64,000 nucleotides of DNA, from positions 1,356,461 through 1,420,460 of the forward strand of contig NW_003314297.1 in NCBI RefSeq assembly GCF_000143415.4. The letters are read 5' to 3'. Of this stretch, positions 18,186-60,747 are shown one piece after another (position 1 is the first letter of the stretch; the number at the start of each line of letters is the position of its first letter). The DNA is from Selaginella moellendorffii. Lineage: Eukaryota > Plantae > Lycopodiophyta. The notes under the pieces were generated by a model that saw only the letters and a program-made list of their open reading frames with translations, had not been told where the DNA came from and made no database searches. A program made the position numbers and the translations under genes.

Positions 18186-18797
18186 ATGGTGATAGTCTAC
18201 GCCGGGCCAGAGATGGAGGAGGCGGAACGGAAGTTACACAGGCATGCCCTTATTTTTTTCTTCTGGAGGAACTCCGGCATCACCATAACCTGCGATCTTG
18301 TCAAGGAGTGGATCAATGCGACAATCGGCATCAAAACAGAGGCAATTCTTTTGTGTCGCGACCAGGGTAATGGCTTCTTTCTTGTCTACTTCGATCGGAA
18401 GCGTTCCCGCGACCTAGTCCTCGCAACGACGGCCCGGCCGATCGGGATTGCCGTGAAAGCTTGCAGCTTCCCGTGGTGCGCCGCCGCAGTCAACGATAAG
18501 GGCGAGGAGTGCTGGCCACGGATGTTGGAGCTTTCGGGGCTTCCGGATGTGTGGCTCATGCTTCTAGACGTGATCGGAAACGCGCTGGGGACCTACGTTG
18601 GAGTGCTGGATCCGGACACGCCCCGGATAGCCGTCATGCTGCCCGTCTCCCGGAGGCTACCATTTCACGTCAAGCTGGAAGTGAGAAAGGGCGTGTTTGT
18701 GAGGCAGCCCGTTGTCGAGTTCCGGGAGGATTGCTTCGATCAGGGGCTTCGACGAGGACGACGGGTATCTCACAGAGCACGAAGATCATCATCATAA
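18186..18797 (+). CDS. DUF4283-like (LINE ORF1-type) domain, probably the N-terminal part of the downstream F-box/Kelch gene
   Basis: GNGFFLVYF, LELSGLP...LDVIGNALGTYVG, PRIAV, LPFHVKL...VRQPVVEF follow the DUF4283/plant L1 ORF1 pattern; overlaps the next ORF in the +1 frame. Confidence 0.7.
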   Translation: MVIVYAGPEMEEAERKLHRHALIFFFWRNSGITITCDLVKEWINATIGIKTEAILLCRDQGNGFFLVYFDRKRSRDLVLATTARPIGIAVKACSFPWCAAAVNDKGEECWPRMLELSGLPDVWLMLLDVIGNALGTYVGVLDPDTPRIAVMLPVSRRLPFHVKLEVRKGVFVRQPVVEFREDCFDQGLRRGRRVSHRARRSSS

Positions 18798-19980
18798 TCA
18801 GCCGAGGCATCCGAATCCTCAAGACGGTCGTGATCATCAATCCGGCGGTGCCCCGACTTCTTCTTCAGAGCTCATCCCCGGCCTCGGACACCAGGAAGCC
18901 ATGCTGTGCCTCGCCAGACTCCCGCGATCCGAGCGCTTGGTCTTCTACACGGTGAGCAAAGCGTTCTATCAACTGGTGCGCAGTGGGAAGCTCGAGAGCT
19001 GGAGGCGCAGTGTCGGCGTCGTTATGGAGCGGCATTGTTTTGTTTGCCTCACCACTCCAGGAGGAGGTTGCTGCTGGAAGGGCGTCTGCCTGGATACAGG
19101 GAAATGGTGGCCGCTTCCGCCTCGAGCTCAAGACGGTGACGAGCTTTTCGGGAGCGTTATGACTGGAACGCAGCTCCTGGTGCTGGGACGCCACAGCCTG
19201 TGGACTTACTGCTTGAGATCTGACAAATGGCTCGCTCCTGCCACCCCTCCTGCGTACGAGTGTGCCTTTGGCAGTAGCGAGCACACAGCATTTGTTGCGG
19301 GCGGGATCGACGAGCAAGGCTTTGCTTCCACAGCCGCTGCAGTGTATACAAGCACCACGTCGTCGTGGAAGTTCCTCCCAGACACGAATAAGGCAAGACG
19401 ATCTTGCTCCGGAGTGTGTATGGACGGGAAGATCTACGTGCTTGGAGGGGTCTCCCAAACAGGCCTGCCAATGTACTGCGGGGAGGAATTCGACCCGGCG
19501 CTCAAAAGCTGGACAGTGATCGACAATATGGTGCCTTGGTCTGAGCATCACATGCGCCCTCTCGTCACGGTGCTGGACAACGAGCTGTTTGGTCTGAACA
19601 CTAGAACTAAGAGCCTCGTGATTTATTGCAAGCGAAGCAATACATGGAAAGCTATTTCCAGAGCTCGGAGTTACGCTGAGCTTCAATACAGAGCGAGGGG
19701 TGAGTCCAACAGCTGGGACGTGGCTGGAAATACACTTTTTACTTCTATAAATGGGAGTTTGATCATCATAAATGGAAGGTACACTTTTTACTTTTATAAC
19801 AGGGAGCTTCATCATTGTCCTGGGAGCCACCGGAGGATGTCCTCCAGCCTCTGCTGGAAGGAGGCAGTGACCAGGAGGACGAGGAGGAGGAAACGCTCCC
19901 TGGGCAACGATGGAGATTCCAGGCGGGTTGTGCAAGCTGTGTGCTGTGATGGCTGGATAGTGTTCTGCAAGCTGTGCTGA
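18712..19980 (+). CDS. F-box/Kelch-repeat protein (SKIP11-like)
   Basis: F-box LIPGLGHQEAMLCLARLP; Kelch motifs AFVAGG, WKFLPDTNKARRSCSGVCMDGKIYVLGG, CGEEFDP...W; no in-frame ATG upstream of the F-box. Confidence 0.88.
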   Translation: MSSSGRIASIRGFDEDDGYLTEHEDHHHNQPRHPNPQDGRDHQSGGAPTSSSELIPGLGHQEAMLCLARLPRSERLVFYTVSKAFYQLVRSGKLESWRRSVGVVMERHCFVCLTTPGGGCCWKGVCLDTGKWWPLPPRAQDGDELFGSVMTGTQLLVLGRHSLWTYCLRSDKWLAPATPPAYECAFGSSEHTAFVAGGIDEQGFASTAAAVYTSTTSSWKFLPDTNKARRSCSGVCMDGKIYVLGGVSQTGLPMYCGEEFDPALKSWTVIDNMVPWSEHHMRPLVTVLDNELFGLNTRTKSLVIYCKRSNTWKAISRARSYAELQYRARGESNSWDVAGNTLFTSINGSLIIINGRYTFYFYNRELHHCPGSHRRMSSSLCWKEAVTRRTRRRKRSLGNDGDSRRVVQAVCCDGWIVFCKLC

Positions 19981-22598
19981 TGGCTGTATAGTCTATCTAT
20001 TTTTTACTATGCCACTTGTTGGGGTTGTATGGTCACCATGATACACGGAGCGAGAAAAAACAGACTACATTTACCTTTGCCAAATTTCACCAGAAATATA
20101 TGTATGGTTGTTTTTCTCCTCCATCAGTCATGAATTTCCAATGAAATCTATATTGTTTTATTACTGTTAGAAACCGCTTTTGGAAATTAATGTGAAACCA
20201 CATCTAAAACTATGCAAATATTGCCAAGAGATATTATAGTGAGGGAAATCTACAAACTTCCCTTGATAAACTCTTAGTAGAAAGAATGTACGTATGATCA
20301 AAATGCATATGTGCTATCTAGTGTGTTTGTTTATCTCTGGCCTACCACTAGAAATGTGATGTCTAAGGGAAAAAAAAAAAAAAACAAAGTAAACACCAAG
20401 TTTGAACATTATATTAGTAATACTTTACTGTGAAATAAGTTTTAATATAGCCATTAACTTCAAGTGAGAAGATCTTTTTTAGTAATGCATAACATACATT
20501 TCCTGAGAACCAAAAATATAGAACATAATGGAAGTTATATAGTTTTAATATACCTGGATTATTCATATCTATCACCACACATTTGTATTTGCTTTAGAGA
20601 TGGAGCCATTCATACAAGAACTTCCATATGAAGTGATGCTTTCATCTATTATGTTTAGTGAGTTCCCATCTTTGAAACCAAACACACTTTTTAAGGTGAG
20701 GATCCATATCTACTTTATTGTTGCCAGAACTTGATTGTGAGAGCAAAACAACAATACCTCAATCTATAGAAATATCTCTTTGTGTTGTTTTTAGTGCAAC
20801 AAAGTAGAATCCTAAGATTTTCTTCAGTCTCTCTAGTGGTAGTATCTCATCCTTAAGGTAGCAACTAAATGGTTGTGAAAAATGATCTATAGAAAAGTAA
20901 GATAAGTGGAATAATAATAACAATAGTAGTATAGAAATAAAAAATATTGATTTGTTAGGAGACATTTAGTGTTGGTGGAGTGTGGAAGGACATTGATATT
21001 TTAGCCAAGTAGGAAACTTAGAAGGATTAAGAGAATGGTGTTAAAAACATTCAAACTAACGTTTAAACTTTAGAGCTCAATGGTACATGAGTCTATTTTA
21101 GAAAAATACAATAGAATATAGAGATTCAAGGAAAGTCATTATTACCAAAGCTCACAGAGGTATGTATTTTTGAAAACACACTTTTATAAGTATATAGTTT
21201 TCTCATTGAATTTTAAAATTTTTTTTTGCAAGCTCAATATTGGATGCATATATCATTGAACCAATACATGCTCTTACACTTAATAATTACAAGAAAATTA
21301 GCAAGGAAGTTTTTGGAGCCTAGAAAAAAACTAAAGTAGAAGCTACAGGTTAAGTTTCCTTATCATGGTATGCTTCATATCAATCAATGTAATAATACAA
21401 TTAAAGCTCATATCTATAATTACAACAATGTTTTGTGAATATACCTATAGTATTTATATTGGAGTATAATTTGGGATAAGGCCATCTCATTAACAACTTC
21501 ATTTATGAAGAGTGTGGAAATTTCTAGGTATATAGTGTTGAAAGTGTGTTCCAGACTTTGTATGATATCCCAATCAATAGCATAGTTATGAAAATAATAT
21601 GGTTGAAACATTATATAAAATGTATATTGATTTTTTGTATGATTTATATTACTTAAACTACCACTATTTTTCACACATTTATTATGTTTAAACTCTCACC
21701 TCTCTAAAGTGTAACGCATGTGATCATAAAATGAGATTTGGATACATTGTCATCATAAATTCTTAGAACCTTGAGGGATATATGAAGTGTTTTTTATTAA
21801 AGTAATTGCCCCTTTTTCAGATGGCTTAAGGGAAGAAGATGGTATAAATACAATTTCTATTGATTAGTGGCTATTTATAAATATAATATACCTTTGAGTA
21901 ATGTATGTATAGGGCATCTTATATTGTTAAGAAAATATTGCTCTTAAATATAAATGACAATTACAAAATTTAAAAAAATAATGGTTTTTTTATCCATAAT
22001 AGAACAAGTCACAACTCTTAGTATTTCTAAATTTGGATTATCTCCAAGTTTTTTGCATATACTACAATAAGTAACAAGTATTAGTGGGGGACAAAAAACA
22101 AGATAACTTACCAGCATTGAGTTAGTCTTTAAGTGGTTAGAAGTAATCATAATAGCAACAAAAACCCTTGCAAGCCAATGGAATCCCTCCCAATTGCATC
22201 ACCCTCATCGAGATCATCCCAACCTGCACAACTCTCCACTCCATCCACTTGGGCAATTGTATCCACGAGTGGAACATTGGTTTGGGCCTTCACTGAGACT
22301 CTACCCTTGGCACCATACTCGGTTTTACTTCCAGTTTTAGTTCTAGGAGATCTTTTATTTCCAATTCTAGTTAAAGGCATTTTAGTTTTCAAGCTAGTCA
22401 TCTTGGGATTTGAGTGAGCTCTGAAATGAGAGTTCAGCCATCATCCAGGGGAAGAGTATGAGGAGGAGCTCGCAAACTCAGTATCAAGGAAGAACTAAGG
22501 AAGAAACATGCTCTCAATTGGATAAGAGGCTTTGATTGAGCTCAAAGCTATGGAGTGTGCAAAATGGAGGGTTATGACTTGACAAAAGAAAAATTCTA

Positions 22599-23178
22599 GA
22601 TAGTGTTCATAATATGCAAGTATGGCAAAAGTCTACTATTCGACAGCAAATAGAGTCTTGTTTGGTGTTGCAAGAACCAGAAATTAATGTGACTGGCCAT
22701 GACATCCAGCCTTAGATAAAGCATATCAACTTAAAGCTTTTATGATGACACCATTCTTATGATAAAAGTCTTTTATGTAGCTTCTCACTTTCATTTTCTA
22801 GAGTTATCATTATCCTTTGGTAAGAAGGAATTCAATAAGCAACACCATTGAGTTTGAGTTATTGTGGAGCGGTGTTTTGGACTCTTGAAGTAAAAATTCA
22901 AGTGTCTTGTCTCTTGATTATGAATGAAATCAACATGTTTACCAAACGTCATGAAAGCATGTTGTGTTTTACACAACCTTCTGATAGACCTTGAAGATGC
23001 AGATACAAATGGAAAACTCATGGCACTTGAGCACAAGATGACGCAAAGAGAGGAGAATAGAGAGCATATTGAATATGGAGATCCTCAACATGCTCATACT
23101 GAACCAGACGAAAATCTGATAACACCTACTGGAATTGAAGTACAAGACACTCTAGTGCTGTACCTTTGTAGTATTTGA
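22599..23178 (+). mobile_element. PIF/Harbinger (HARBI1, DDE_Tnp_4) transposase C-terminal remnant
   Basis: DSVHNMQVWQKS..., DKAYQLKAFMMTPF, KEFNKQH, VIVERCFGLLK*KFKCL, ACCVLHNLLID, with stops and frameshifts. Confidence 0.85.
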
Positions 23179-23236
23179 AAGATCTGAATAATATTATCTA
23201 TTCACCTTTCTTTCAATTACAATGATTTGTATTTTA

Positions 23237-23623
23237 TTAAGACTCTGGAAACTTAATCTTGTAGGCAAATCTGTGAGCTATTGCTTTTGTTGTCTCTAGA
23301 ATGATCTCGTGCACTATAGCCTCTCCAAACGCAAACTGCTCAGCAAGCTCATTGTAGTTGAGGTTCTTCATTAGCTTATAGAGCATGACTGCAAGGTGAA
23401 TGGGAACCAGAACCAAATGCCTATAGTGTGTGTTCTGCTTTTCCATGTCACTCTTGATTTTCAACTTCCACTTCCAGTGTGAGTCATCATAGGTGTCGAG
23501 CATGAAAAAGTCCCACCACACAAAGCTCCTTGGCTTCACCCACCATAAACCAAGATTCCTGTATATGGGCAGCTGCAAATGAGCAGTTAGTAGCCTAATA
23601 TGTAGCTCATAATGCACTTGCAT
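23237..23623 (-). mobile_element. PIF/Harbinger transposase N-terminal remnant (HTH_Tnp_4 region)
   Basis: WWVKPRS..WW, QNTHYR...LAVMLYKL...YNELAEQF...IKFP. Confidence 0.8.
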
Positions 23624-24374
23624 TGCCTAACCACATAACAATCCTCCATTGCACCTAGTCACTAACTCTTTCCACATAAGAAAGTTAAGATGAAAAACCA
23701 CTTGCAATGTGGTACAAATATGAAAGACTTTTGAAGTGAAGAAAAGGTTGATCATTTTTGGCTGTCCTTTATAGAATTGTAGGTGCTGGTCAATAGAAGT
23801 GTGCCACGTGATATGTTAATACTACCAAGATTGCTATGCAACAATTAAAAAGTTTTGAGCACTAATCTGCAAAAAATTTTTCATCTTCTTTAGTGTAATT
23901 CACAAGAGGCTATTAACTAAGAGAATCCGAGGTCAGGATAGAGCCATCAATCTCTTCCATAGCAATTCTCTATATCTCTAGAAGGTCCACCAGCAGCTCA
24001 ATAAAGTTCTTTTCCTTTAATTTAAAGTATGAGCTTGTTTCTCTCTAAAATTACTATACCCTTCTTATCCTCTAAGATTTCTGCCTAATCAATCTTCCCA
24101 ACAAGTTAGTAAGTTGTTCTAACAACCTAGTAATCCTTTAAATCAAAATATTTAGGCTTGCCAATGTCCCAAAGATCTAAATCTTGTGTAAGAAGAGAAG
24201 GAATCCATTATTGTTAAATGAGGTTGTGGTTTTAAAGTTCTCTCATGTAAATGATAAGAGAAAAAATATAAATATAAGCAATAAAAAAGAACAACTTGAG
24301 AAATAATCCATTAGAGAATACAGAGTAAAGAGAAGACAAATACATGACATAATTGGTCTAACCAGAAATCCTTT

Positions 24375-24614
24375 TTAATGCTTCAAACTCAAAAACAAGA
24401 GATTGTAGCCTACCTTCTGCCATATGATACATAACTTATATAGCTTCTTGTCATTAACTTCACAACATTGCACAATTGATTGTTGAATTGTTGTAAAACT
24501 ATATCCAAACTTATGAGCAATTTCTTCAAAGTTAGTATTAATTCTCAACCTAGTCAAAGCAATTGAAAGCTTTGTCTTTAAAGGGATTATTTTCCTGAAT
24601 CTGTTTATATACAA
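24375..24614 (-). mobile_element. Second Harbinger-type HTH_Tnp_4 remnant
   Basis: NRFRKIIPLKTKLSIALTRLRINTNFEEIAHKFGYSFTTI. Confidence 0.7.
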
Positions 24615-24978
24615 CTATGAAAATCAAATGTAGAAGACACACACTTACTAGCACTGTAAAAATGCCTTAAAGTGTGATCCATGAAAGCAGTAGACTTTTC
24701 GTATGACCAAACCTTCGGCAAAGCTCTTCCTTTCTTCTTCTTTGCAACCTCAATAGCTGCTTCTGACTTCTCAAATTATAACTTTGCCATCAAGATATTA
24801 GTATTGTTGAATCAGCATAAATTTACTCTCTAATGGATTCACTCTTTCTAAAAAACTCTCTCAACACATCCACTGAAGTTCGGGACGGTTCGGAAAATTC
24901 CGAACCTTAGCCTACTTTTCAATTGCCATATCCATTCGCTGCAAGCTGTGCATTGTGATGAATTGAATAATTTCTCTT

Positions 24979-27900
24979 CTACTTGTATCTGTTTTTAAAC
25001 AGATTATGCCGCTTGTTGGGGTCACGTGATTTTCCTCGTGAACCACCACCACCACCACCACCAGTGCTGCATGCAAAACATTCAGCAAGAAAACATAGAC
25101 TAGTTGATCTGGATTACCTGAATTCTGTATATAATCTGCCTTTGCCACCAGACATCGCACTCATGGATCCTGCACTGCGATGAATTTTCAAGTTGGTGAT
25201 ATCATCTGCATCGTGTTCCAGTTTCTCGACACCAACAGCATCTTCCCCCGCATTTAACACCTGTTAACAGCATTCAATCAATTTTTATGTTTGTGCAGCA
25301 AACCATACCTTTGACAATAGATCCATTTGATCTTGTAGCTTACTGTAACCCAAGTCTTCGCCACTATCAGGTGGTGGCAAATTCGTAAGGACCTGCATGC
25401 ATATCCTAAAAATAATGAAACAAGAGTAAACATAGGTGGATCTTCTAACCTTGAAACTATATCCCTGGTCGATTAGAAACTGCTGCCTCTTAGATGAATA
25501 GTACATCTCCTGCAATGCCAAGGGCTCAATTGCATGTCAGGTGCAGCAAAATCTCACCTGTGTATCTGTGGAGACCAAGGAGTAAAAGAAAGCATTGTAC
25601 TCTTCTGAGCCACCTCTTACTCGGTCACTTGGTTTTCCCTGACCATCATATTGAGGGGTGAAAACAAAAAAGAAATGGAAGGAAACCTTTGCTCTTAAAA
25701 TTCGTCCCAGCCGTTGTGCTTCCTGCCGTCTAGAACCAGCATGTGATGATATCTGGATGATCACATTTGCCTCTGGTATGTCGATTGAATTATCTCCAAC
25801 CTGTAAAACATATGTAACCAACCGGCCATGCAAACCGATATTTTAATACAAACCTTTGACAGAAAAATAGTGTTCACATCAGGACTGTGCTTGAAGGCAT
25901 ATAAAATCTTTGTCCGTTCGTGATGACTGGAAAGGAACACCACAAAGTCAACTTTGTAAAATGGTGTTGGTGATATAAGTACCTTGTAGGACCATATATG
26001 AAAGGCTTCTTCAGTTTAGTGGCATACTCTCGCAAAGCAAAAAGATTATCAGAGAAAACTATAATCTTATCACCACGCTGCTGCTCATGAAAGCGAACAA
26101 GAAATTCACAAGCTCGAAACTTGTTTGGGTTCATGACATATAAAGCCTGTTACAAAATGATTGTAACTTAGTATTATATGTGATTAATAAAAAGAAAAAA
26201 ATGACATAACTACATTTTAAGAACATTACCTGCTGTTTCTTGTTTTCCTTCTTCAGATACTCTGCATAAAACTCTTTCGTCATGGGACACCAGACCTCCG
26301 CGCACTGAACGTTGGCAATGTAGCCATTTTTCACGAGGTCTAGCCAGTTTGCTTCGTAAAGTTTTGGACCAATCAGAAAGTTCAAATCAGTAATACGCTC
26401 ATCCTCTCTCACAAGGGTGGCTGAAACAAAAACACTCAGGTGAGATTCACAGTAAGATAAGCTATGCGCAAACCAGTTAGTCCAAGCTTGCAGTGCGACT
26501 TGGTGATGCTAATCACTTTTCGAAACATATGGGCTGGCACGACATGCACCTATACGAAATATTAGCAATCCTTGCAAAAGATGGATTTCAACTCTACCTC
26601 GTCCATAAGAAGCAAGCCCCATTCACGGCTTCTTATGAGCTCAATCACTTTCTCAGACTCTTCCGATCTCTTTCCCTTGAAAGCGACCATATTGTAAGTG
26701 GTAACAATAACGCATGCGTTTCCTTTGAATTTGTCTTTGCTGTCTGATGTGAATCTGCAAATCTGATCGTCACGAATGGTCGACCAGAGCTTGAACTGAA
26801 ACGCCCATTGATCCACGGACACGGCGTTAGTGGCCAAGCAGAGACAGCTCCTTCGAATGCGGCATGCTGCAGATACTCCAACGAGTGATTTACCAGCTCC
26901 ACAAGGAAGAACAATTATTCCCGACCTCGCACGACCTACAAAAGACAGATCAATACCGGGCAAAAAAGAATTTCAAAACTTCTGTGCACCATTTCCAAAC
27001 ATCTTGCTCAGGCTCTTTTCTTGATACGGCCGAGGTTGAGCCTGAGGTTTGAGCTCGATACTCAACTCAGGATTTACCTGGAAGCGCAAAAGTTAGCATC
27101 AAATGCAAAAAGAGAATGAAGTTTTGAGTACCGTATCATTTCTAAAGTCGTATTCTTCAAGCAATGGATAACTCAAATCAGGTGACAGGCAGCGCTGTTT
27201 TACAAGCTCCACCTGCAAATGGACGGCACATCGTGAGATCTTGTCATGAGCAGAAACAACCTCACCTGATCTGGATCGATTTCAAAAGAGTGAACTTTTC
27301 GCTCCTCCGCTACTTCACCCGTCAGAGACTCCAAGTCTGTCGGTAGGCTCTCGGCAACAACAGATATCTGCGACTTTGAATTTCCTGAGCCATTCTGATA
27401 CAGGCCAAGAATCTAGCTCACCTGAGTCGTGTTGAATATCCTCGCTCGGGCGATAACAGGGTCGTTCAAGAATTTCTTAAATATCTGTAGCAGCCGTTTA
27501 CGAAAAAGATGAGAGTGCCTGAAGGCTGAACGTTCAGCATGTACCTCTTCATTCGGCGACTCAATAAAGTAGCGATTTTTTTGAAGAACGAGCTTGGCTT
27601 TTCCACAATTGAGAGTTGCTTTCCGGATGAAATCCAACACTGTCGATGGCAACTTGGCTTTGGACAGGCGCTCGAGCACGGTGATCACGGCGGACGTTTC
27701 CAAACCAAACGATACGGCAGCGTAGAGAGAATGTGGAGTGAGGTTGTACTCGTGCATATGCTCTGGCCTACAGAAATCACAAAAAATAAATAAATAAATA
27801 ACAGTTCGTTCGCTCACTCCCACAGGCTGAGAAAAAAAGTTTTACCTGCACACTGGCTCCGCAACCGCAATGAGAAAATCGTAAGCTTGCTTGTAGAGCG

Positions 27901-28482: not shown

Positions 28483-28492
28483 GTGCGGAAGA

Positions 28493-49356: not shown

Positions 49357-50572
49357 ATGGCTTCCAATGCAGCAGCGGGATTGCTCGTCCTCTTGGTGGC
49401 GCTCATCGCTTCGATCGCCAATGCTGATGGTAAGGAAGAACCATCGTCCTTTTTTGTTTCATCTTTGCGAGATTTCCTTTGATCGGTGACTTCGATCAGG
49501 TGGTCGCAAGCTAATGAAGAGCCAGGTGGAGCAGTACTACGACACTCCATCCCCGGTTTATCCCTCGCCATCCCCGGTTTATCAAAGCCCCAGTCCGGTA
49601 TACAAGTCTCCTCCATCCCCAGTTTATTCATCGCCTTCTCCAGTCTACAGTCCACCACCATCTCCAGTTTATTCTTCTCCTTCTCCAGTCTACAGCCCGC
49701 CACCATCTCCAGTTTATTCCTCACCATCTCCAGTTTATCACAGTCCCCCTCCTGTTTATTCCTCGCCATCTCCAGTTTATCACAGCCCCCCACCATCTCC
49801 AGTTTATTCATCGCCATCCCCGGTTTACAAGCCCTCTCCATCTCCATCCCCGGTTTACAAGCCATCTCCATCTCCATCCCCAGTTTACAAGCCATCTCCA
49901 TCTCCAGTTTATCACAGCCCTCCTCCGGTCTACTCCTCGCCATCCCCGGTTTATAAGCCATCGCCTTCCCCAGTTTACCACAGTCCACCTCCAGTCTATT
50001 CCTCTCCATCACCCGTGTATCACAGCCCACCTCCGGTTTACTCGTCTCCATCGCCTGTGTATCACAGCCCACCTCCGGTTTACACTTCTCCATCTCCGGT
50101 TTATCACAGCCCATCTCCAGTTTACGCTTCTCCATCTCCTGTATATCACAGTCCCTCTCCAGTGTATCAATCACCATCGCCAGTATACTCCTCGCCATCT
50201 CCAGTTTACAAGTCGCCACCATCCCCAGTATATTCTTCTCCATCCCCGGTTTACAGGTCGCCACCCTCGCCTGTATATTCATCTCCATCCCCAGTTTACA
50301 GGTCGCCACCTTCTCCGGTGTACTCGTCTCCGGCGCCAGTTTACAGATCGCCACCATCGCCGGTATATTCGTCCCCGTCTCCGGTCTATTCGCCGCCACC
50401 ATCGCCAGTTTATTCACCACCACCATCGCCGGTATACTCATCGCCATCGCCAGTCTACAAATCGTCACCGCCTCCGGTGTACTCGTCACCGTCGCCAGTG
50501 TACAAGCCCCCGACGCCGCCGCCGGTTTATTCGTCTCCATCGCCGGTTTATTCTTCGCCACCTCCCTACTGA
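49357..50572 (+). CDS. Extensin-like hydroxyproline-rich glycoprotein
   Basis: Signal-peptide exon MASNAAAGLLVLLVALIASIANAD, intron 49430-49499, then dozens of SPSPVY/SPPPVY repeats; TATAAATA near 49206. Confidence 0.95.
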
Positions 50573-51105
50573 AGGATGCTTAGAATGTAAAGTTTCCATT
50601 CTCTGAAATTTCAATGAGCATTGTTTTCGGAAATATTGGTTTCCATTCTCCTAGAACAGTATGGGTTAACGTTTGAGCCGGAGAGGTTTTTCTTCGGCGA
50701 TGAGAGATCTTTCGCTTCAATTTAAGCTCTTCGCGTATGGTTTCCTGGACTCCGCGGATCGAGCAGAACAGCACCACCTTCATTCTTCTTTTTAGCTCTG
50801 GAGTTTCTCCAGCTAGATCTAAGTTCAATCCTACAGAAACTACTCTCCATCAACATATGCCGCACCTCCGCGCAGGATGATTTCACATATGATGTCAAAA
50901 CGGCCGCGGGTATTTAATCGACAATCGCAAAGACGGTGCTAGATCTGAAATTTAAAACAATGTGCGAAATCAGCTACTGAGAATCTTTAGCATAGCGGTA
51001 TATTCGCTTGAACCATAGACCCGCCGCATGGTTTTGAGCGAGGCATGCTGGCTCTCGGCGTCGATGGTATGTTCGATCCAAGGCTTCTTCGTTTCCTGCC
51101 CTGCA

Positions 51106-52870
51106 TGAATCCTCTAGAAAATTGTCAGCACTGCTTCGACAAATCTCGGCTCTTGGCACTCCACCAGGCCGGGAAAGCTCTGGCCGCCCTGTTCTAACCT
51201 CGACATTCGCTGGGAAGGGCAATCGAAAGAAGAAAGCTTCTTTCCCGGATCACTCCCAGCTCCGGCGCATTCTACTGCGCGATCTAGAGGATCACGGCCG
51301 AGTGATCTGTGGCACGCTCCATTCCGCGTCAGGGGCGTGATGACCGTGCTCGAATCGGAGGAATGCGAGAGCTTGGCGCTGAGGGTTGCCATCTACGACG
51401 AAGATCCGGCATGGCGCAGGAAATATGCCTCTGGGAAGAAAGGGGCCGTACTTCAAGCGCGGCGCCGACGGTGTTCTCTTCGTTCGCGTCGACAATCCCA
51501 GGTCCATTCAAGAGATCTCGAGCTTTGCTTGCGGTGACGATGATGCCCCCGCGAGTGACAGCGCTTCTTCTCCGCCAGGGAAGGACTACCCCGCCGCCAA
51601 CTCTCTCAAGACCGAAGGGAATCACTTCTTCGGCCTCAAGAACTGGAACAAGGCCATCGATCTTTACTCCCAGTGCGTGAAGAGGTGTGAGGCAGCGCTG
51701 GCGCGAGGATCCATCGCTGGCGACGCGGAGAACGCCCTCAAGGTAGAAGTTTTGCTGCCGGCGCTCTCCAATCGTGCCGAGGCTTTCCTGAAGCTCGAGG
51801 ACTTCGAGCACGCTCTGGTGGATTCAAACAAAGCGCGATGGTGGGCATATGAAGAGCACGCATCGCAAGGCGCAGGCACTGGAAGGCTTGCAAGAGTTTG
51901 AGAAGGCTGTGAGAAGGCGCTCGAGCTCTCTCCCTGGTCGTCGGCCGACCTCGCTCCATGCTTCGTGCATGCAAGGCTTGCGACCAGCAGAGCAAGACTG
52001 GGGAGTTCGAGATCGATGGTTTTTTCCAGAAGAAAGATCCGGCACCGAAATGCAGCGATTTCGTTGGGCCCGTGGACCTGATCGCTGCGGATGTCGACGA
52101 CAGTGGACGTGGTGTTGGGCTTTTTGCGACCAAGGACGTGAAAGTTGGCGAGCTTCTGGTCGTGAGCAACGCTCTTGCTACTGGGTACTACGGCACTCTT
52201 GCGTGAGCAACGTTTCTCTGGTTCAAGTTGGAGACGCCATGTTTGCTCACGCCGCTCGGGACATCAAGGCCGGGGAGGAGCTCTTTCTCAGCTCCTTCAA
52301 CACCTTGCAGCCTCTCGGGCGTCGGCAGGCCTTTGCAAGCGGCCTGGGATTCGCGTGCCGCTGCAAGCGGTGCCTGTTCGACAGCTCTCTCGAGATGCTT
52401 CTTCGGGACGTGGAGGATCGTTTCGAGGACGTTGTTCCTATGATCTAGGTCTGTTCAATCAGGACTGCTGCTGGAGATTTCACTCTGGCGCTGGAGAAGA
52501 AGCTCCAGCTGGTCGATGCTGATGAAGAGAAGTGCTGGCTGCGAGCTTCTTACACGCTTTCGTACCTCACTGCGGCTGTCAACTTGGAGCTCCTGGTGAA
52601 CTCTCCCGAGAGGATTTGCAGTGGCGAGGAGCTGCTGAAGTTCATCGAGACGACTTGCCCCGGCCACTCCGTGATGCTGGAATTCATGGCGAAGAAGGTT
52701 GGAACGATGATGTTTGGGAGGGGCGTAAAGCAAGGGCGGGCTTCTGGATAAGGAGCTTGTGATGCGAGTTCACAGGGCGGCTTTTGGTAGCAGGAAGTGC
52801 GATCTCAAGGGCGTGCTGAAGATCTGGTACAACCAGTGTGAGATGGTACGTTCGTTTCTAAGTTTTCACT
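51106..52870 (+). pseudogene. Disrupted TPR + SET-domain methyltransferase (ATXR1/SDG35-related architecture)
   Basis: TPR (LKTEGNHFF, LSNRAEAFLKL), SET-N (GRGVGLFATKDVKVGELLVV), SET-C (HSCVSN...AARDIKAGEEL...FACRCKRC) spread over several frames with stops. Confidence 0.85.
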
Positions 52871-53109
52871 TCGCTCTCATGTAACCAGTTTGTGTTGCAG
52901 ACTCCAAGCACTTTCGTTTGAAAGTTTCGTGACAACGAGTTCGTTCGATCTTATATGGTGTGGAATTTGGATTTCTAACTAAGGATTTTTTATTTACTCT
53001 TCTCTTTGCAGATCCAAGCACTCTTCGTGTTTTTTGTCTTCGATCTTATGCTTTCAATGTAAAGATATATCTATTTTGTCATGGTGTGATTCAATCTATG
53101 GTGAGTGAG

Positions 53110-53285
53110 CTTGTTTGGGAGAGGTGTGAAGCATGCCAACGGATGCAAAGGCGGGCTCCTTGACAAGGAGTTTGTGATATGAGGTCAAAAGGCGGCTTTT
53201 GGTAGCAGGCCGATCTCAAGGATGTGGTGAAGATCTGGTACAACCAGTGGGATGGTACGTTCGTTCCTATGTTTTCACTTCGTTT
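53110..53285 (+). repeat. Diverged duplicate of the TPR-SET 3' end (copy of ~52710-52873; shorter third copy at ~60766-60830)
   Basis: Shared ggcggcttttggtagcagg...gatctcaagg...tgaagatctggtacaaccagtg...atggtacgttcgtt. Confidence 0.85.
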
Positions 53286-53329
53286 TTTCGTTTGTTTTTT
53301 GAAAGTTACTTTATTGGTTCCTCGCCAAT

Positions 53330-53710
53330 GGGCTTGTCGCGATGTGGCAAATCAGAACGAGGAAATGCTGGTGGTCGGGAGTTTGACGATTGCTCGCTAC
53401 AGAGGGCAAGCTCAGGAAAATATGGGGAATTTCTTAACGCGGCGTGCTGGCAAGAACAAGGATTTGCGGTATTTCTCCTTCCTGTTTCTCAGGGTGAGGT
53501 TGAGCTCCGGGCGGAAGAGTCTAGCCCGACGACGCGATTGAGGAAGCGAAGAATCCGTCCAGGAGATGCAAGGAAGACTGCGAGTGACAAGGACGCGCCG
53601 GATGAGGGAGGAAACAGCTATGCCGCGATCAACGAAGCCAAGGAGGAGCTCAAGGACAACTGACCATCTCGAATGCCAGCGATGTGGAAAAATCTCGAGA
53701 AGGGATCTAA
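53330..53710 (+). pseudogene. Deleted copy of the LEA-like gene at 61011-61731
   Basis: Near-identical blocks gctcgctacagagggca.gctcaggaaaatatggggaatttctta and gcgatcaacgaagccaaggaggagctcaaggacaa, with internal deletions. Confidence 0.85.
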
Positions 53711-53731
53711 GGAAGCGAGTGAGTTATAATC

Positions 53732-53756
53732 ATTTGAACCTTCGACCTTGTGGTTA
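53732..53756 (-). pseudogene. 3'-half fragment of tRNA-Asn
   Basis: atttgaaccttcgaccttgtggtta versus intact attcgaacctctgaccttgtggtta at ~61814-61838. Confidence 0.6.
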
Positions 53757-54599
53757 GCTAAGTTATTGATAAAGGTTCCGCTCCTCTGTGTCATGGTCTT
53801 GGCATCGTTTCCTGGAGGGTCTTGTGCTCCGTTGCTCCTGGAGTTCGTTGATGATGAAGACTTCCATGATTTGTGCTCGTGCGTTTGTCGTCGGCAATCC
53901 ATGTTGGTGAGGTACCGCTAGCGGTGTTGCAAGTCCAGGGGCGGCTAGTAGTTGGGTGTTCCAGTCAGTGCAGAGGTGCATACTTCATGGAACTTTGGTT
54001 GGTTGTGCCTAATTCGAGTGGCTCCCTGTTCCGTATCATGCAATTGTTCTCTTGTTGTGCCATACATCTCGTCCGGGTTGATCTCCTGTGTATAAGTGGT
54101 ACTTGGTTTTGGCTTTCCTGTTGTTGATCCACTCGATCAAGGTTGTGTCTAAAGGTCAGTGTTTTCCTTGAAGCTCTTGAGCAAGTGGTCGAGATTGTGT
54201 CCAAATCTGGTCATCCATCTGACTACGTCGTGCCACCCTCCTGTCCCGTGTTGTTGATCCAGTTGTTTGGAGTCCTCAATGGCAAGTCCGCAAGCTTTCC
54301 TCCTCGTAGGAACCAGTTCTTCTGCACACCAACACACTCTGCTGCGTCTTTCAGACTCGATTCACGCTGGGTCTGCTGTGAGCGCCGGGAAACCGGCACA
54401 CGCACCCCCACCCCCTCGCTGGGTGTCCAAACAGTGAAGATAGAGGATAGTTCGGCTCCATGCCGTGGTCTCTATGGGCAAAAGGCCAGCTTTGGTCCCC
54501 ACCGTAAAGCACCACTGTTGTGCGGTAGTATACCTTTTTGGCTTCCCGGCAAGTGGTGACAGTTCTAGTGTAGAGCTTGTTCCACTGCCCTTCGTGCTG

Positions 54600-56500
54600 C
54601 CTAGCTAGGGAAATTGTCCATCAAATGTAATTCCATGCTTCTTTCCTGCGTTTTGCATAAAGCAACTTACATTGGTAATAACAGTGAGATTTTGCCATTG
54701 CAAGATACATTAGAGCATCAACAATATTTTGATAGTTTTAGGATTTCTCCCCCTAACTTTAGAAAAAAATTCTTCACAGTGTTGACATAACGAAGAGATA
54801 AATTGAGAAAAATACATGTATTCTATTGATGCAGAATAAACTTTCATGATAATCTATTGTAATGTATTTGCAAGACCAAGCCAATATGATATCTCACTGA
54901 GATCAGTTCATCCATATAGATAATAATGATTGAAATTGTAGCAAACATAAATATTCTTTGTCCTTATGAATCCAGGAAATTTATTAATTGTGGGAAAGAA
55001 ACCTTCATCAAATATCACACAAGAAGTGGAGTTAAAATATGTATAATTATAAGTGGGAGAGATGATATTTCAATAGCATTGTACTTATTGAACAAGATTA
55101 TGAAGGGTTGTTAATGCAAATGCATGTATAAGTTTTACAAAATCTTAATGAACATACCTAATTTGATCTATTTTAACATATTTAGCTCTGCACTAAATAA
55201 AAAACTTTAGAAATGAATACTATATTGCATAATTGACATAATTGCTAAAAAGTATTGTCATAATTATCAATATATCCAAAAGTGTATTTTGCATAAGTGG
55301 TGGTGCTCAATTATAATGTTGTACCTTGAAGATATATTGGAAACTTACATAGATATTGAACATCATCCTAAGAATTATAGATGGCAATCACTATAAAATG
55401 ATTAACTAATAGTACATATCATCTCTAAAATTCTTACAAAAATAATTCCACCAAAACTTAAATATTAGTAATAAAAGCAAAGAGTTACACCACATGTCAT
55501 GAATGTATTTTAATTGTTTAGTTGTAATGGCATAACATATGTAATTGCACTAATTATTGCTCTAGAATAGAAAGAAGAGGAGGCCACTATAAAAGAGTAT
55601 GTTACTTTATTATAAAGATGAGAAAAAAGAAGCAAAAAGAAAAAAAAGCAAAAGAGATCAAAGGCTAAATCTAAATTAAAAATAGAAATCGAAGCACACC
55701 TCAAGGACAATCATATTTTTCTTTAAATATAAGTGTATAAAATATAAAAATGTGCAATTTTGATTAACCCAAAAAAAACCTTAATTTATAAATGGTTCAA
55801 ATTAAAACCTTAAAAAAACTATAAAAAATTGTAGACCACATATTTCAAGTTTGAGTGTGTTAAATGCACCAATTCTAACATCTCGTCAAGTTGAAGCATA
55901 CAGCATTTAGAAAGAATACTTGTGATTCCAGTGATTGGGTGAGTTTAACTTATTTTCTTCTTTTATGTGTTGCTTTTGGAATTTCCTCATCACTAGAATG
56001 TTCTCCTTAGCAGCAAGGAACCTGAATGCGGTGGGAGCACTGCAATCTTATTAAAAAACAGCATTTCTAAAGTTTTAGTCTAATGCTTCATAGTCATGTA
56101 AACAATATATAATGAATACTTCAGTACCATTTGAATAGGCTCAACATTTGGCAGTAAGTCTACTGCAAATAAATTGGATCCATCCCCTTAGAACACTTAA
56201 AAAACTGATTACGACCGTTCTGGGTACGACCCCCAAACCATGTCACCCTTTGAATTGATCAGTCCGTTGAGCTGTACTGTGGGAAACTGAAACACGCAAG
56301 TTGTTCCAGCCATCCAAACTCATCTTCGCATTTGCTCACATATAAACATAATTCAAATGCAATTTGTTGGAAGGTCAAGGTTGTAATGTCAACAAAAACA
56401 TATTTTATGGAGTTAGAGTACGTATCCACATGGTTGTGGTTGACAATAAAGATTTAATGCCCATAAAATTGATCTATGAAAGATGTGTTGTATGACACCT
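54600..56500. other. AT-rich, CG-poor non-coding island (probable decayed TE)
   Basis: Composition like the 20-24.9 kb island; no recognisable motif. Confidence 0.5.
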
Positions 56501-56717
56501 TGAGCACGGTTTTCCATCGGGCTCCTCCCAAAGTCACATATTCTGATTTTAGAAGGCCTCAAAAAATCTTGAATCGCTTGCGTGAGGGGTCAGATGGATT
56601 CCGAACATCCTGTCAATCATCTCGCCACTCTCGTCCACGGGTCTGACCGCCCTCGCCTCAGGAGCGAATGATCAGGTGAGACGCCTAGAGATAGATCTTA
56701 GGCCACGAGCAAGAATC

Positions 56718-59700
56718 ATGGTGGATCCAGGCTTTGTCTCGGCGCTCATTGCAGAGATAGTGCACCTGGCGATAGTAGAAGCGGCTAAGGTTGTGATGTG
56801 CCGGGAATACTGTATGCAATTAGCAAAAATGGTGGATTCTTGTGTCAAGCCGGTCGTGTCTGAACTGGGGAGCCTTGGGAACAATCCGCAGCTCAAGAAT
56901 GTTGCTGACACCTGGCTTGCAAGCCTTCGGGCCTGCCTAGAAGATGCGCAGGCAGTGATCATCGAGTGCAGGAGCGTGCATTCCTTCAACGTTTTCGTCA
57001 AGTAAGATGCATTCTTCTTTCTTCTGAGTAACGCATCAATTGATCAGTGCATCGTTCTGCAGGTACAGGCTCTCGCGCAGAATCATGAGTATTCTGGTCA
57101 AGATAAAGGAACTTCACGAGGCTGCCAGTACTTGGAACGTGGCCCTGTCTGCCAAGGTTGTCACACAATGCAGTGAGGTACTACGGTTGCTTCAAGACAA
57201 TTACAGATACGTTTCACTTTCGGCAAAGACCTGTGGATGCACACAGTCTGAGAGTTATAGCAAAGATCGTGCGATTTTTGAGATAACGAATGAAGCAACG
57301 AGTCACTCGGCTGGTTTAGACGTGGTCGACGAGCCAACTACAGAACTTCAGCCGATTCCGAAGCTGGTGTTTGGACTGGAGGAATTGAGCAGCCGACTTG
57401 AAGCAGTCCTTCGAGATGGCACAGGACGATGGGTTGGTGTTTGGGGCAAGGGAGGTTCAGGAAAGACGCTGTTGACACAAACTGTCACTAACAGTTTATC
57501 GGTGAACAATCACTTTGGAGGAAAGGTATATTGGCTCACGGTTGCACGAAATCCCAACATTGCCAGGTTGCAAAGTAGATTACGCAAACACATCGGCCGT
57601 GGGGAGCAGCTCTTTTCATCCGAGGAAGCTGGCAGGAAAACCCTCATCAACTGCTTGAAGAACAGCAAAGTGTTGTTGATCTTGGACGATGTGTGGGATG
57701 GAAATGTGCTGCAGTGGTTTGATGTGGTGGATGCTCCAGGCAGCAAAATTCTGTTGACTTCCCGGAACAACAGTGTCTTTGACAAGGTGCCATCAACGGT
57801 CATCGAAGTGAAACTGCTTTCGGATGAGCATAGTTGGAATCTCTTCTGTGGCTGTGCATTTCCGGGACAAGACCGGCAACAGCTAGAACACGACATGGAA
57901 CCAATACTTGCCGAAAGAGTAAAGCAAGTGGTCTCTGAGTGCAAAGGACTGCCTTTAGCTCTCAAAGTCATTGGTGGAAGCATGGCAGGCAAGCAGCAGC
58001 TAGGCGACTGGGATTCTACATTACGCAAGTTGAAGAATGCCGAGGTTTTGAACGAGGAACAAGAGAACCAGGTGTATCACAGACTCAAGCTTAGCTATGA
58101 CGAACTCGATATGATTGACAAAGCCCGAGGCAGAGCACTGCAAGAGTGCTTTCTCTACTTCGCAGCCTTTCCTGAGGATGCAGTTATAGAGGTGGAGCAG
58201 CTCATTGGGTATTGGATTGGTGATGGCTTGATAGGATACAAAGACGATGAAGATCCTCAGGTTGAGGCTTATTACATTCTGGGCCAGCTTATAGGACGCT
58301 CACTCGTGGATCTGGAAGTAGGTTGGACATATAGCCAGAACACGAAGTTCTTGAGTTGCAAAATACACGATGTGCTTCGGGATATGGCGATTTACATATT
58401 GGAAAACCAGAAGAAGGCCACTGAGTATGCGTGCCTGTTTCTGTCTGGAAGGGAGTTTCCTGCAGGACTATGCAAAGGTACTGGCCAAGAGAAGTTCAAC
58501 GCTAAGAAGCTTTCTTTGATAGGAAATCAGGTGGAGAACGTCGATAAGCTTGGAACTCGGGCTCCGGATGTGGAAGTGCTACTCCTTAGCAACAACATTC
58601 AGCTGAAACATCTTACCGGACGGTTTCTGTGGAGCTTTAAAAAGCTCCGTGTACTGGACCTGAGCAGGACGGGCTTAATATCTCTTCCCATGGAGATTGG
58701 GAAGCTCAAAGAGTTGGTCGTCCTCGACATTAGTTATAGCAGCATCCGATCTGTGCCGGACTCTTTGGGCAGGCTGGTGAAGTTGGAACATCTGAACATG
58801 CAAAACTGTCCATTGAAGAGCTTTCCAGTGCACAAAGTATCGAATCTCGTCAACTTGCGTTATCTCAACACAAGAGGGTGTGGAGATATTTGGGACCAAA
58901 ACCGGCACAGTCCTTGCAGCTGTGTAACATCTGAACTTCCAATACAAGGCCTAAAGAATCTAGCAGCCTTGCAAATGTTGACCAGGTTATGGATCAGCAG
59001 CCGAACTACAGAACGCTTCCCTGCTATCTCTTCAACCAGGCTGGTACATCTCAGCCTTTACTTCGAACAACTTTCAGTCATTCCAGACGAGCTCCAGTCT
59101 CTGGCCGCTCTAGAGGTTCTCGATGTCAACACTTGCAGATTACTCCAGAAGCTACCGGACTATCTCGCCAAGTCCTTCTTGGGACTGCTTGCTCTCGACC
59201 TTCGTGGCTGCACGTCGTTGTCGCAACTTCCTTCAGATCTGCAGGAACTACAATGGCTTCAAAAGCTGGATCTTGAAGGCTGCTTGTCCTTGCAATCTCT
59301 ACCAGAGGCTTTCGGAAGTTCAGGTGCATTTCCTTCGTTACAAGAGCTTTTCATGACGGGATGCAGAAGACTAGAAGCATTTCCAGAATTGCAACCAGGG
59401 GCGCTTCCTCGTCTTCGTATGCTCAAACTGCCGTTTTGTGCGCGCCTGCAACACTTGGATATACATCCCAAGGCGCTGCCCAACCTTGTCCACTTGAACC
59501 TGGGTGGCTGTGCCGGATTGAAAGAGCTCCCTGACGAGGAAGCGTTGAGATATTTTTCATACTTGGAGGAGCTGGTTTTGAACAACACGCAAATATCTAG
59601 CTTACCTGCGAGTATAGGACTGCTTCCAAGGCTGAAGAAGCTGGATTTGAAGCAATGCATGCAACTGAGAGCGTTACCATGGGTTGATTTAAGCGGTGAC

Positions 59701-60747
59701 TACTTCATCAGCTTGGAAGAGATATCTATGCAAGGAATTCCCATTCGAGAACTGCCCAAGGTTTTGGCTGCAGCACCACAGCTCCGAAAAATGGACCTCA
59801 CGGACTGCGACTTCATAACCCTGACGGACGAGGTGTTCGGCTTGTTGAAAACCAGAAACGTTAATCTCATCAGAGCCAACGTTCAGATCATATCTGCTCT
59901 GAATGAAGCGGAAATGGGGCATGAGCACGAAGCAGACAAAGAACCGATAAAGCAGAAGCCAGAAACTGGGAAAGCAGCTGAGAACACTTCAGAGACGAAT
60001 ACCGACCAACATGAATCTGCTACTGTCTTGGATCCGAGTAGTTCAAAAACGAGATCTACAACCAACCAGCACAGTACCTCCTTTCCTTCATTCAACAATT
60101 TCCTAGACTGGTTAGCAGGATTCATAGACGAAACCAGTATAGATGAAGATGTAGAATATCAGAAGCTGGCAAAGGATGCAAACGGCTACGATCCTGGTCA
60201 TGTGCGGAGGGTCGATTTGCGAGACATGAAACTGCAACTCTTCAAGCGAGGATTGGAAGATCATCTGGTGCTGGGCTCATGCAGCGGAGACGTCATCACT
60301 GAGGAGGTCCTCAAAAACCTGGCCTGTACGAGCTGGAACGTGCACTCGTATGTTGGTGCTCGTTTCCTGGCAAACGGTTTCTTCGAGCTGGCATTCGCAA
60401 ACTCGCTGGATGTTCAGAAGTTGCTGGAGAAGCGGTTTGCGCAGTATGAAGATCGCGTGATCCTCTTCCAGCCTTTCCAGCAAGACTTCAACCCCAACGA
60501 GGTTGGGAATATCAAAGCAGCTGTTTGGGTGGGATTGCCCCTCCTGCCGACGGATTGCTTGCATCCCAAAGTTTTGAAGGCGGTTGGGAATGCACTTGGT
60601 AGCTACTTGGCATATGAGCTTGACGGTGGAAGGCTTCCCAGGGTTTGCTTCGCATGCACCATCCAACAAGAACGGGAGTTGCCTAGTGAACTGGAGCTGG
60701 TTCTCCCATCCGGCAAAGTCTGGCTGCAGCGCTTGGTATGGTCGTAG
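56718..60747 (+). CDS. RPW8-like CC-NB-ARC-LRR immune receptor with C-terminal DUF4283-like integrated domain
   Basis: Exon 1 RPW8-like helix bundle (...FNVFVK|YRLSRRI; intron 57002-57062); P-loop GKGGSGKT, LLILDDVW, KILLTSR, GLPLAL, CFLYFAAFPED, IHD; LRRs; C-terminal ANGFFELAF...VWVGLPLLP...VGNALG. Confidence 0.93.

Follow-up and report, generated by a model that had tools for sequence, protein, structure and literature searches.

A DUF4283 domain at the end of a probably ADR1-like NLR gene of Selaginella moellendorffii, and a weakly similar reading frame beside an F-box/Kelch gene

Within a 64,000-nucleotide window of the Selaginella moellendorffii scaffold GL377601.1, an NLR gene at 56718-60747 (+ strand), already annotated as RefSeq XP_024538933, really does end in a DUF4283 domain of jumping-gene protein origin. 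In the L1 ORF1 proteins of plants (L1 ORF1p), DUF4283 is the dominant domain (PMC5203782, PMC11288735). A 203-codon open reading frame (ORF) with an ATG start (18186-18797, + strand), situated immediately upstream of an F-box/Kelch gene, probably belongs to the DUF4283/DUF7597 neighbourhood as a very diverged member, to judge from its motif order and its position in a protein-language-model atlas. On balance, the evidence favours two separate captures of LINE fragments over a system, one surviving as an integrated domain in the NLR tail and the other, the 203-codon ORF, deriving from a former chimeric frame.

A probably ADR1-like NLR gene ending in a DUF4283 domain

The translation of the NLR gene is 100% identical to XP_024538933. 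Exon 1 (56718-57001, + strand), whose translation forms the start of that protein, encodes an RPW8-like coiled-coil N-terminus and closes with the donor CAA/GTAAGA, and a 61-nt intron separates it from exon 2 of isoform X2 (57063-60747, + strand). Exon 2 is an uninterrupted 1235-codon ORF with a codon log-odds of +0.19 bits per codon, and holds the NB-ARC domain, a winged helix, leucine-rich repeats, a low-complexity linker and DUF4283. The NB-ARC domain spans 57412-58104 on the + strand (PF00931, E = 1.7e-43, ORF residues 125-355), and the leucine-rich repeat region 58573-59829 on the same strand (Pfam LRR_14, LRR_4, LRR_8 and others, E values from 1e-18 to 1e-28, ORF residues about 512-930). 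The N-terminus matched the Pfam RPW8 family at E = 2.6e-5, with 24.3 bits against a cut-off of 30.4, and the best matches in a sequence search of the PDB, which cover the N-terminus, were At5g04720 (known as ADR1-L2; residues 11-633), an RPW8-domain NLR, and ADR1. On these matches to the ADR1 family, and with an RPW8 score below threshold, we tentatively assign the receptor as ADR1-like with an RPW8-type N-terminus. A 2016 survey listed no NLR with an RPW8-like N-terminus in Selaginella (PMC5039405); contrary to that survey, the gene described here would mean that Selaginella does have one, at the sub-threshold score given above. The gene is one of few NLRs in this lycophyte, whose NLR repertoire is very small.

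The DUF4283 domain occupies 60307-60744 (+ strand), of which 60307-60618 are covered by the PF14111 match and the remainder runs to the stop codon. The match extends over model positions 5-108 of 124 and, at 53.3 bits (E = 2.8e-14), lies well above the Pfam gathering threshold of 27.2. PF14111 is also among the precomputed RefSeq domains of XP_024538933, all five RefSeq isoforms retain the tail, and its codon usage is host-like (log-odds +0.25). In the protein-language-model atlas its neighbours are DUF4283 clusters, along with a DUF7597 cluster. The NB-ARC domain, the leucine-rich repeats and DUF4283 share a single reading frame, as expected of an NLR with an integrated domain (NLR-ID). A preliminary description of this DNA had portrayed the tail as a LINE-ORF1p-type domain lacking its zinc knuckle, and the in-frame PF14111 match bears this out, as does the result that zf-CCHC_4 gave no match to the tail even at E ≤ 10. 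The same description held that the tail and the 203-codon ORF both stop where a zinc knuckle would begin. The NLR protein ends about 26 residues beyond the point at which the DUF4283 model is projected to finish, with the final residues ...WLQRLVWS, the 203-codon ORF runs into its stop codon or the F-box frame, and in neither was there a zf-CCHC match at E ≤ 10 or a CX2CX4HX4C pattern.

Relatives of the tail were sought by word-based searches, which returned only the protein itself among proteins of 680-2160 residues, with no orthologue bearing the same tail, and nothing among proteins of 198-630 residues; a PDB sequence search with the tail likewise gave no match. Single-sequence AlphaFold2 models of the two segments (203-codon ORF and tail) had pLDDT values of 34 and 33, too low for fold comparison.

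We propose that a LINE ORF1 protein contributed its N-terminal module, DUF4283 without the CCHC knuckle, to the last exon of an ADR1-like NLR. The acquisition would be old, since no close ORF1p relative was found. The tail is a constitutive part of the annotated protein. Integrated domains of NLRs are used to find host proteins that pathogens target. The most likely role of the tail is that of such a domain, and it may act as a bait that signals when a pathogen factor or a retroelement ribonucleoprotein binds or modifies it. Alternatively, the tail could be a passenger with no function, left by a LINE relic that became exonic and is tolerated at the C-terminus, which we regard as a possibility to be taken seriously though an unlikely one. 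Many plants have NLRs with retroelement domains to which no function has been assigned (PMC4759884), the tail comes after a long low-complexity linker, and the searches returned no orthologue sharing it, all as a passenger might behave; yet its frame has stayed open for about 250 codons whose usage is host-like, the family profile is still matched at 53 bits while no close ORF1p source is detectable, and the tail is present in every isoform.

Fusions of this kind are known from angiosperms, where DUF4283 has been recorded as an NLR integrated domain in Rosaceae and Fabaceae (Fragaria, Malus, Medicago), rice and Zea luxurians (Sarris et al. 2016 PMC4759884; PMC10257044; PMC11734081). Because the domain is thus a published NLR integrated domain, the lycophyte gene is a new case of a known fusion. 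Like its angiosperm counterparts, it is an NB-ARC-LRR receptor with an additional PF14111 domain of retroelement origin in the same protein. Unlike them, it belongs to a lycophyte with few NLRs and is built on an ADR1-like backbone whose N-terminus is of the RPW8 type, as in the helper NLRs of angiosperms; in addition, its DUF4283 lies in the LRR exon with no knuckle or RT remnant. If the assignment is true, DUF4283 on an ADR1-like lycophyte NLR would extend integrated domains, and the recurrent use of LINE ORF1p, far outside flowering plants, and one of the very few Selaginella NLRs would become a tractable case.

A second reading frame with weak similarity to the NLR tail

The 203-codon ORF is absent from all gene models, but its codon usage is host-like, with a codon log-odds of +0.25 bits per codon (the ORF being outside the training set) and a GC3 of 0.71. 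The preliminary description had taken it for a copy of DUF4283. Pfam does not recognise it as such: neither PF14111 nor PF24530 matched the 203-residue ORF at E ≤ 10, or its first 165 residues at E ≤ 1. A word-based homologue search returned no match, nor did a full phmmer search against 1.84 billion representative proteins, self included. Its neighbours in the protein-language-model atlas are DUF7597 and unnamed plant clusters at 0.93, with 197 of 256 features in common. Our literature search on DUF7597 found no publication.

Direct comparison of the ORF with the NLR tail gave a single BLASTP high-scoring pair (48 residues, 35% identity, 23.5 bits, pairwise E = 0.002), each side being the other's best non-self match in the six-frame translation of the window. 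At the level of the window the E value is 0.2-0.37, which is not significant alone. Shuffle tests of the pair gave p = 0.002-0.007, and the part upstream of the high-scoring pair on the same diagonal, tested separately, gave p = 0.015-0.04. The alignment of the two sequences extends to about 150 residues, few of them identical, with colinear motifs spaced at 55/13/17/12/14 residues in the ORF and 55/14/18/15/15 in the tail. Of the motif-by-motif alignment described earlier, the strings themselves are all found in the two translations and are colinear: GNGFFLVYF/ANGFFELAF, LSGLP/LPLLP, VIGNALGTY/AVGNALGSY, PRIAV/PRVCF, LPFHVKLEV/LPSELELVL and VRQPVV/WLQRLV. What does not follow from them is proven homology. 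Given a window-level E of 0.2-0.37 on one side, and shuffle p values of 0.002-0.007 together with an upstream p of 0.015-0.037 on the other, we regard common ancestry of the two segments as likely rather than proven. At such low identity the claim of the same module occurring twice is not supported, the sequences being highly diverged, and a recent origin of the ORF as a copy of the tail was ruled out on the same ground.

The resemblance might also be due to chance, the ORF being unrelated to DUF4283 and representing either an orphan or lineage-specific frame or an N-terminal extension that the F-box/Kelch gene had from the outset. The missing Pfam match, the missing homologue among the representative proteins, the window-level E value and the post hoc choice of the pair would all agree with this. 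The motifs, which are colinear and similarly spaced along about 150 residues, the independent similarity upstream and the language-model neighbourhood common to DUF7597 and DUF4283 clusters speak against it, so that we consider a chance resemblance rather unlikely and retain the ORF as a probable, very diverged relative.

A candidate chimeric frame upstream of the F-box/Kelch gene

The F-box/Kelch reading frame (18703-19980, + strand) is +1 relative to the 203-codon ORF. Its F-box-like motif starts with LIPGL at 18871 and its annotated start methionine lies at 18901; the frame opens at 18703 and has its first ATG at 18901, although the motif begins upstream of that position. The ORF matched Kelch_1 with 40.4 bits (cut-off 20.1) and F-box with 12.7 bits (cut-off 20.5). 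Public models of the gene, including a GenBank model of 359 residues and a second, partial one from 18856, begin inside the F-box motif or without a methionine. Plant Kelch-repeat F-box proteins of the KFB/KMD type form the comparison class for this ORF. It resembles them in being intronless, in its length of about 370 codons, and in its F-box-like start (LIPGL...CLARLP) followed by Kelch repeats, and differs from them in having no start codon ahead of the F-box motif, an F-box score below the Pfam threshold, and a foreign 203-codon ORF adjoining it in another frame.

The preliminary description placed the DUF4283-like segment on an SCF adaptor, that is, on this F-box protein. In the sequence as assembled the two frames are one base apart and do not support this placement. 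Codon usage in the linker favours the F-box frame. The likeliest history, in our view, is a former single frame comprising the 203-codon ORF, linker, F-box and Kelch repeats: the ORF directly precedes the intronless F-box/Kelch ORF, in which the F-box motif lacks its own start codon, and the single frame would have been broken in this assembly by a shift of one base at some point within 18703-18797. The frame change could mean that a chimeric gene was inactivated recently, or it could be an error of the assembly. Another haplotype was sought through the 90% clusters that contain the F-box/Kelch protein or the NLR; their members all lie on the same scaffold, and the GenBank locus retrieved is identical to the window, so the frame change is known from one assembly. 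Programmed frameshifting was rejected, no evidence for it having been found.

The two ORFs might instead be exons of an intact gene that is expressed under conditions other than those sampled and encodes a DUF4283-like-F-box-Kelch protein. A weak candidate intron (18681-18870, + strand) is the only GT-AG interval with a near-consensus donor (GAA/GTGAGA) that joins residues 1-165 of the upstream ORF in frame to LIPGL. A pyrimidine-rich tract precedes the acceptor, the junction falls exactly on LIPGL, and both ORFs are stop-free and coding-like. However, to stay in frame the splice would have to use the second AG of CAGAG, and GAG acceptors are disfavoured. At 190 nt the interval is also roughly three times as long as the single intron confirmed here, that of the NLR (61 nt), and throughout 18681-18870 the F-box frame contains no stop and has a weakly positive coding score. 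Moreover, the model was made by no gene predictor, and the reads contain no splice joint at a place where their depth is zero. RNA reads were examined over 17000-21000 in two sampled RNA-seq runs; none fell on the 203-codon ORF in either, and the Kelch part was covered by just two tiny contigs, in a run merely guessed to be RNA. The reads therefore contain no sign of a joint transcript. On all these points together, the spliced gene appears improbable.

Overall, the locus looks like a LINE-fragment chimera, possibly one in decay. In joining a LINE ORF1 fragment to a host gene it resembles the melon gene CmHSP70-16 (PMC13704437) and DUF4283-rich pseudogenes (PMC7935947); these are angiosperm cases detected by Pfam, whereas the Selaginella ORF is too diverged for Pfam. 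The F-box half is chiefly an example of the short-lived chimeras to which LINE fragments give rise, and adds little unless it is expressed and in frame.

Two separate captures are favoured over a paired system

The 203-codon ORF and the NLR tail share with plant L1 ORF1p (DUF4283 plus zf-CCHC_4, e.g. poplar Celine, PMC11288735) the DUF4283 profile match in the case of the tail and, weakly, the same motif order in the case of the ORF. They differ from L1 ORF1p in having no CCHC knuckle, no ORF2 nearby and host-like codons. They would be captured domains, not LINE elements.

Repeated recruitment, as the preliminary description put it, is a claim that the upstream locus does not sustain: the 203-codon ORF fails Pfam, does not share the reading frame of its presumed host, is part of no gene model and drew no reads in the RNA runs sampled. 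Nor do the loci look like a decoy-target pair or other system. They are 37 kb apart on the + strand, with a FAF gene, a bHLH gene, a gene for a FAD-binding (fumarate-reductase-type) flavoprotein and a SET-domain gene between them, none related, whereas paired NLRs are adjacent, typically head-to-head, and co-regulated. No two-gene system is shown, because the upstream ORF resembles the tail only weakly, lies in a different frame from the F-box/Kelch gene, has no annotation and drew no reads in the RNA data examined. A special affinity of the module for surveillance proteins likewise finds no support in the published cases: DUF4283 has been found not only on NLRs but also on an HSP70 fragment (melon CmHSP70-16) and is strongly over-represented among pseudogenes (PMC4759884, PMC13704437, PMC7935947). 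This distribution fits promiscuous capture of LINE fragments.

Two adaptive scenarios can be set against separate captures. According to the first, a lineage-specific mobile ORF1 module was added repeatedly and adaptively to proteins that recognise substrates, with the NLR and the F-box protein acting together as a decoy-target pair or in surveillance of retroelement ribonucleoproteins. Both hosts are indeed recognition-type proteins and neither DUF-like segment has a zinc knuckle, but the strong divergence of the segments, the state of the upstream ORF (out of frame, unannotated, silent in the sampled RNA), the unrelated genes in the 37 kb between the loci, and the DUF4283 chimera on HSP70 along with the enrichment of the domain in pseudogenes (PMC13704437, PMC7935947) make it very improbable. 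According to the second, a knuckle-less RNA-binding-type module of LINE ORF1p would have been captured independently by the ADR1-like NLR and the F-box/Kelch adaptor and kept as a bait for retroelement ribonucleoproteins or for pathogen factors targeting them, which we hold to be very unlikely. If this bait reading were true, the two genes would provide an early-diverging example of transposon-derived integrated domains in two different surveillance chassis.

Genomic surroundings of the two loci

Further ORFs flanking either locus encode a PPR protein, a LEA-like protein, a P450 and a product without a Pfam family. Among the neighbouring ORFs scanned on both sides of both loci (PPR, the gene without a Pfam family, LEA-like, P450, SET, bHLH and FAF), none matched an RT or endonuclease family, in agreement with the earlier observation that no such sequence adjoins either segment. 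The AT-rich, CG-depleted islands reported beside each host gene were likewise both found, one at 54560-56450 upstream of the NLR (GC 0.31, CpG o/e 0.29) and one at 20000-24800 downstream of the F-box/Kelch gene (GC 0.33, CpG o/e 0.17). The former contains no ORF with a Pfam match. The idea that the islands are LINE bodies was rejected, as Pfam gave only faint PIF/Harbinger-like signals; these relics lie in the latter island and match Plant_tran at E = 0.18 and HTH_Tnp_4 at E = 0.075, both sub-threshold.

A DUF4283 domain at the C-terminus of a probable ADR1-like NLR

The NLR gene at 56718-60747 (+) carries a C-terminal DUF4283 domain. Its long ORF (57040-60747, 1235 codons) matches XP_024538933 of RefSeq ("probable disease resistance protein At4g27220 isoform X2") at 100% identity and combines NB-ARC (Pfam E 1.7e-43), winged-helix, several LRR families, and DUF4283 (PF14111), the last located at ORF residues 1090-1193 and scoring 49.8-53.3 bits (cut-off 27.2). 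This domain, already annotated on the protein in public data, is present in all five RefSeq isoforms, which vary only in the N-terminus, the first-intron acceptor, and one internal 15-residue stretch. Codon usage in the tail is host-like (+0.25 bits/codon vs. +0.19 in the remainder of the NLR). Neither a zf-CCHC match at E ≤ 10 nor a CCHC pattern in the translation was found. In a word search of a 5.8-billion-protein set, the tail had no close relative among proteins of 680-2160 aa or 198-630 aa; it is thus not newly copied from an annotated ORF1p. Its nearest language-model neighbours are DUF4283 clusters, with a DUF7597 cluster at 0.89.

Upstream of the long ORF, a short exon (56718-57001) is RPW8-like (Pfam E 2.6e-5, 24.3 bits, under the Pfam cut-off), and for this exon with 57063-58700 the closest solved structures by sequence are At5g04720 (ADR1-L2, aligned from residue 11), an RPW8-domain NLR, and ADR1. 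Taken together, this exon and these relatives point to an ADR1-like backbone with an RPW8-type N-terminus. They contradict a 2016 survey in which RPW8 was stated to be absent from S. moellendorffii (PMC5039405), and concur with PMC12512272; only two NBS-LRR genes have been counted in this species (PMC5039405, PMC11126693). Diverged copies of a LEA-like gene segment (53337-53721 and 61055-61681, 73-88% identity) bracket the NLR and its upstream AT-rich island, the downstream copy starting 33 nt past the NLR stop codon, with further copies at 52750-52789, 53165-53204, and 60780-60819. An old local duplication may be involved, with the NLR inserted into it or carried within it.

DUF4283 predominates in the ORF1p of plant L1 elements (PMC5203782, PMC11288735). 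As an integrated domain of NLRs, it has been listed for Fragaria, Malus, and Medicago (PMC4759884) and for Fabaceae (PMC11734081), as well as for rice and Zea luxurians (PMC10257044). The architecture is thus of a kind already known in angiosperms, to which this gene adds a lycophyte example. The domain also occurs on a melon HSP70 fragment (PMC13704437), and is strongly enriched in plant pseudogenes (PMC7935947).

A probable diverged relative upstream of an F-box/Kelch gene

The preliminary description paired the NLR tail with a second copy of the trimmed LINE ORF1 module, recruited onto an SCF adaptor. The ORF in question (18186-18797, +; 203 codons, ATG start), hereafter d1, precedes an F-box/Kelch gene. 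The half of this pairing that stands is the NLR tail, a DUF4283 domain (53.3 bits) without a knuckle, whereas d1 fails the formal Pfam membership test for DUF4283. All motifs quoted for d1 are present in its translation, and its codon usage is clearly coding-like (+0.25 bits/codon, GC3 0.71, with both other frames negative; d1 was excluded from the training set). Pfam yielded no match at E ≤ 10 for the whole ORF or residues 1-165, and the word search none either; a phmmer search of 1.84 billion representative proteins did not return even d1 itself, hence no public gene model contains it.

Direct comparison of d1 with the NLR tail gave a single BLASTP HSP (48 residues, 35% identity, 23.5 bits, pairwise E 0.002), and when the window is searched in all six frames each is the other's best non-self match, at E of only 0.2-0.37. 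The local score exceeded that of shuffled d1 sequences (p 0.002-0.007), as did the region upstream of the HSP when scored by itself within a band along the HSP's diagonal (p 0.015-0.037); this upstream similarity corresponds to the NGFF...F motif, spaced identically (55 residues) in both sequences. By language model, d1 lies nearest to plant clusters, among them a set with DUF7597 (0.93, 197/256 shared features). AlphaFold2 single-sequence models of d1 and the tail failed (pLDDT only 34 and 33). Overall, d1 is probably a true, very diverged member of the DUF4283/DUF7597 neighbourhood. Directly past the DUF-like part, its own frame (18725-18765) reads ...VVEFREDCFDQGLRRG..., by eye like the start of an ORF1p knuckle (CFxCGxxGH) in which the second Cys is substituted. 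This likeness, if real, would mean that the captured piece formerly reached into the zinc knuckle.

The F-box/Kelch ORF lies in frame +1 relative to d1 and scores above threshold for Kelch_1, with just 12.7 bits for F-box. It is open from 18703 and lacks an ATG before 18901, its F-box-like motif (LIPGLGHQEAMLCLARLP...) starts at 18871, and public models either take Met 18901, which falls within that motif, as their start (359 aa) or run incomplete from 18856 and have no Met; the gene would therefore require upstream coding sequence. The sole coding-like ORF upstream is d1, which starts ~150 nt past the 3′ end of an expressed gene (exon 17265-18030).

Two routes could join them. A one-base frame change inside the 18703-18797 overlap of the two frames would restore a single reading frame, and linker codon usage prefers the F-box frame (+0.06 vs. 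−0.39 bits/codon). We give roughly even odds to such a former single frame, now shifted in a pseudogene or by assembly error. The corresponding GenBank locus (GCA_000143415.2, scaffold GL377601.1) agrees with window positions 14856-23980 at every base. Alternatively, a 190-nt GT-AG interval (18681-18870), its in-frame acceptor being the second AG of CAGAG, would place the junction exactly on LIPGL, the start of the F-box-like motif. This interval is ~3 times as long as the NLR's 61-nt intron, the only one confirmed in this analysis, and the F-box frame remains open across it; an intact spliced fusion appears improbable. In raw reads from two RNA-seq runs, each sampled to about 12%, no splice joints were seen at d1/F-box, where depth was zero over d1 and the F-box/Kelch ORF compared to 17-46 over the upstream gene; the Kelch part is touched only by two short contigs of 151 and 199 nt, both from a single run presumed to be RNA. 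The remaining probability falls to d1 being unfused, an independent ORF or a chance one.

Relationship between the two loci and their surroundings

The proposal that both genes form one surveillance or decoy-target system was not borne out: 37 kb separates the loci, which share a strand, and nothing links them beyond weak domain similarity. Between them are FAF, bHLH, FAD-binding (fumarate-reductase-type) flavoprotein, Pre-SET/SET, and extensin-like repeat genes; past the NLR comes a P450 gene. The most economical mechanism would be capture of LINE ORF1 fragments by host genes, one capture being old and fixed in the NLR, where it may serve as a sensor or bait or may simply be carried along as a passenger, and the other probably a decaying or mis-assembled chimera before the F-box/Kelch gene.

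As originally described, no RT or endonuclease family was matched among the ORFs scanned, and the AT-rich, CpG-depleted islands beside both genes are real (20000-24800, CpG o/e 0.17; 54560-56450, CpG o/e 0.29). Short ORFs in the first (22924-24614) show faint similarity to PIF/Harbinger elements (Plant_tran E 0.18, HTH_Tnp_4 E 0.075), which points to the remains of a DNA transposon and not of a LINE. We rejected the islands as LINE bodies; both look like decayed transposon relics, and are probably methylated. ORF fragments at 25500-27000 (−), beside the first island, look by eye like pieces of an XPB/ERCC3-type helicase whose introns would be AT-rich.

The expressed exon 17265-18030 (+), with its splice acceptor at 17265, is probably the last of its gene (276-aa product without a Pfam family); its RNA reads carry ~11 SNPs, one 3-nt insertion, and one 3-nt deletion, allelic differences showing two haplotypes ~1.4% apart. 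The extensin-like gene includes a long array of 21/42/45-nt repeats (49500-50570) coding Ser-Pro-Pro-Val-Tyr-type units, open on both strands and without Pfam matches. Finally, a continuous 882-codon PPR ORF (14025-16673, −; PPR_2 E 3e-100) appears in GenBank's annotation as two separate models (586 and 280 aa).
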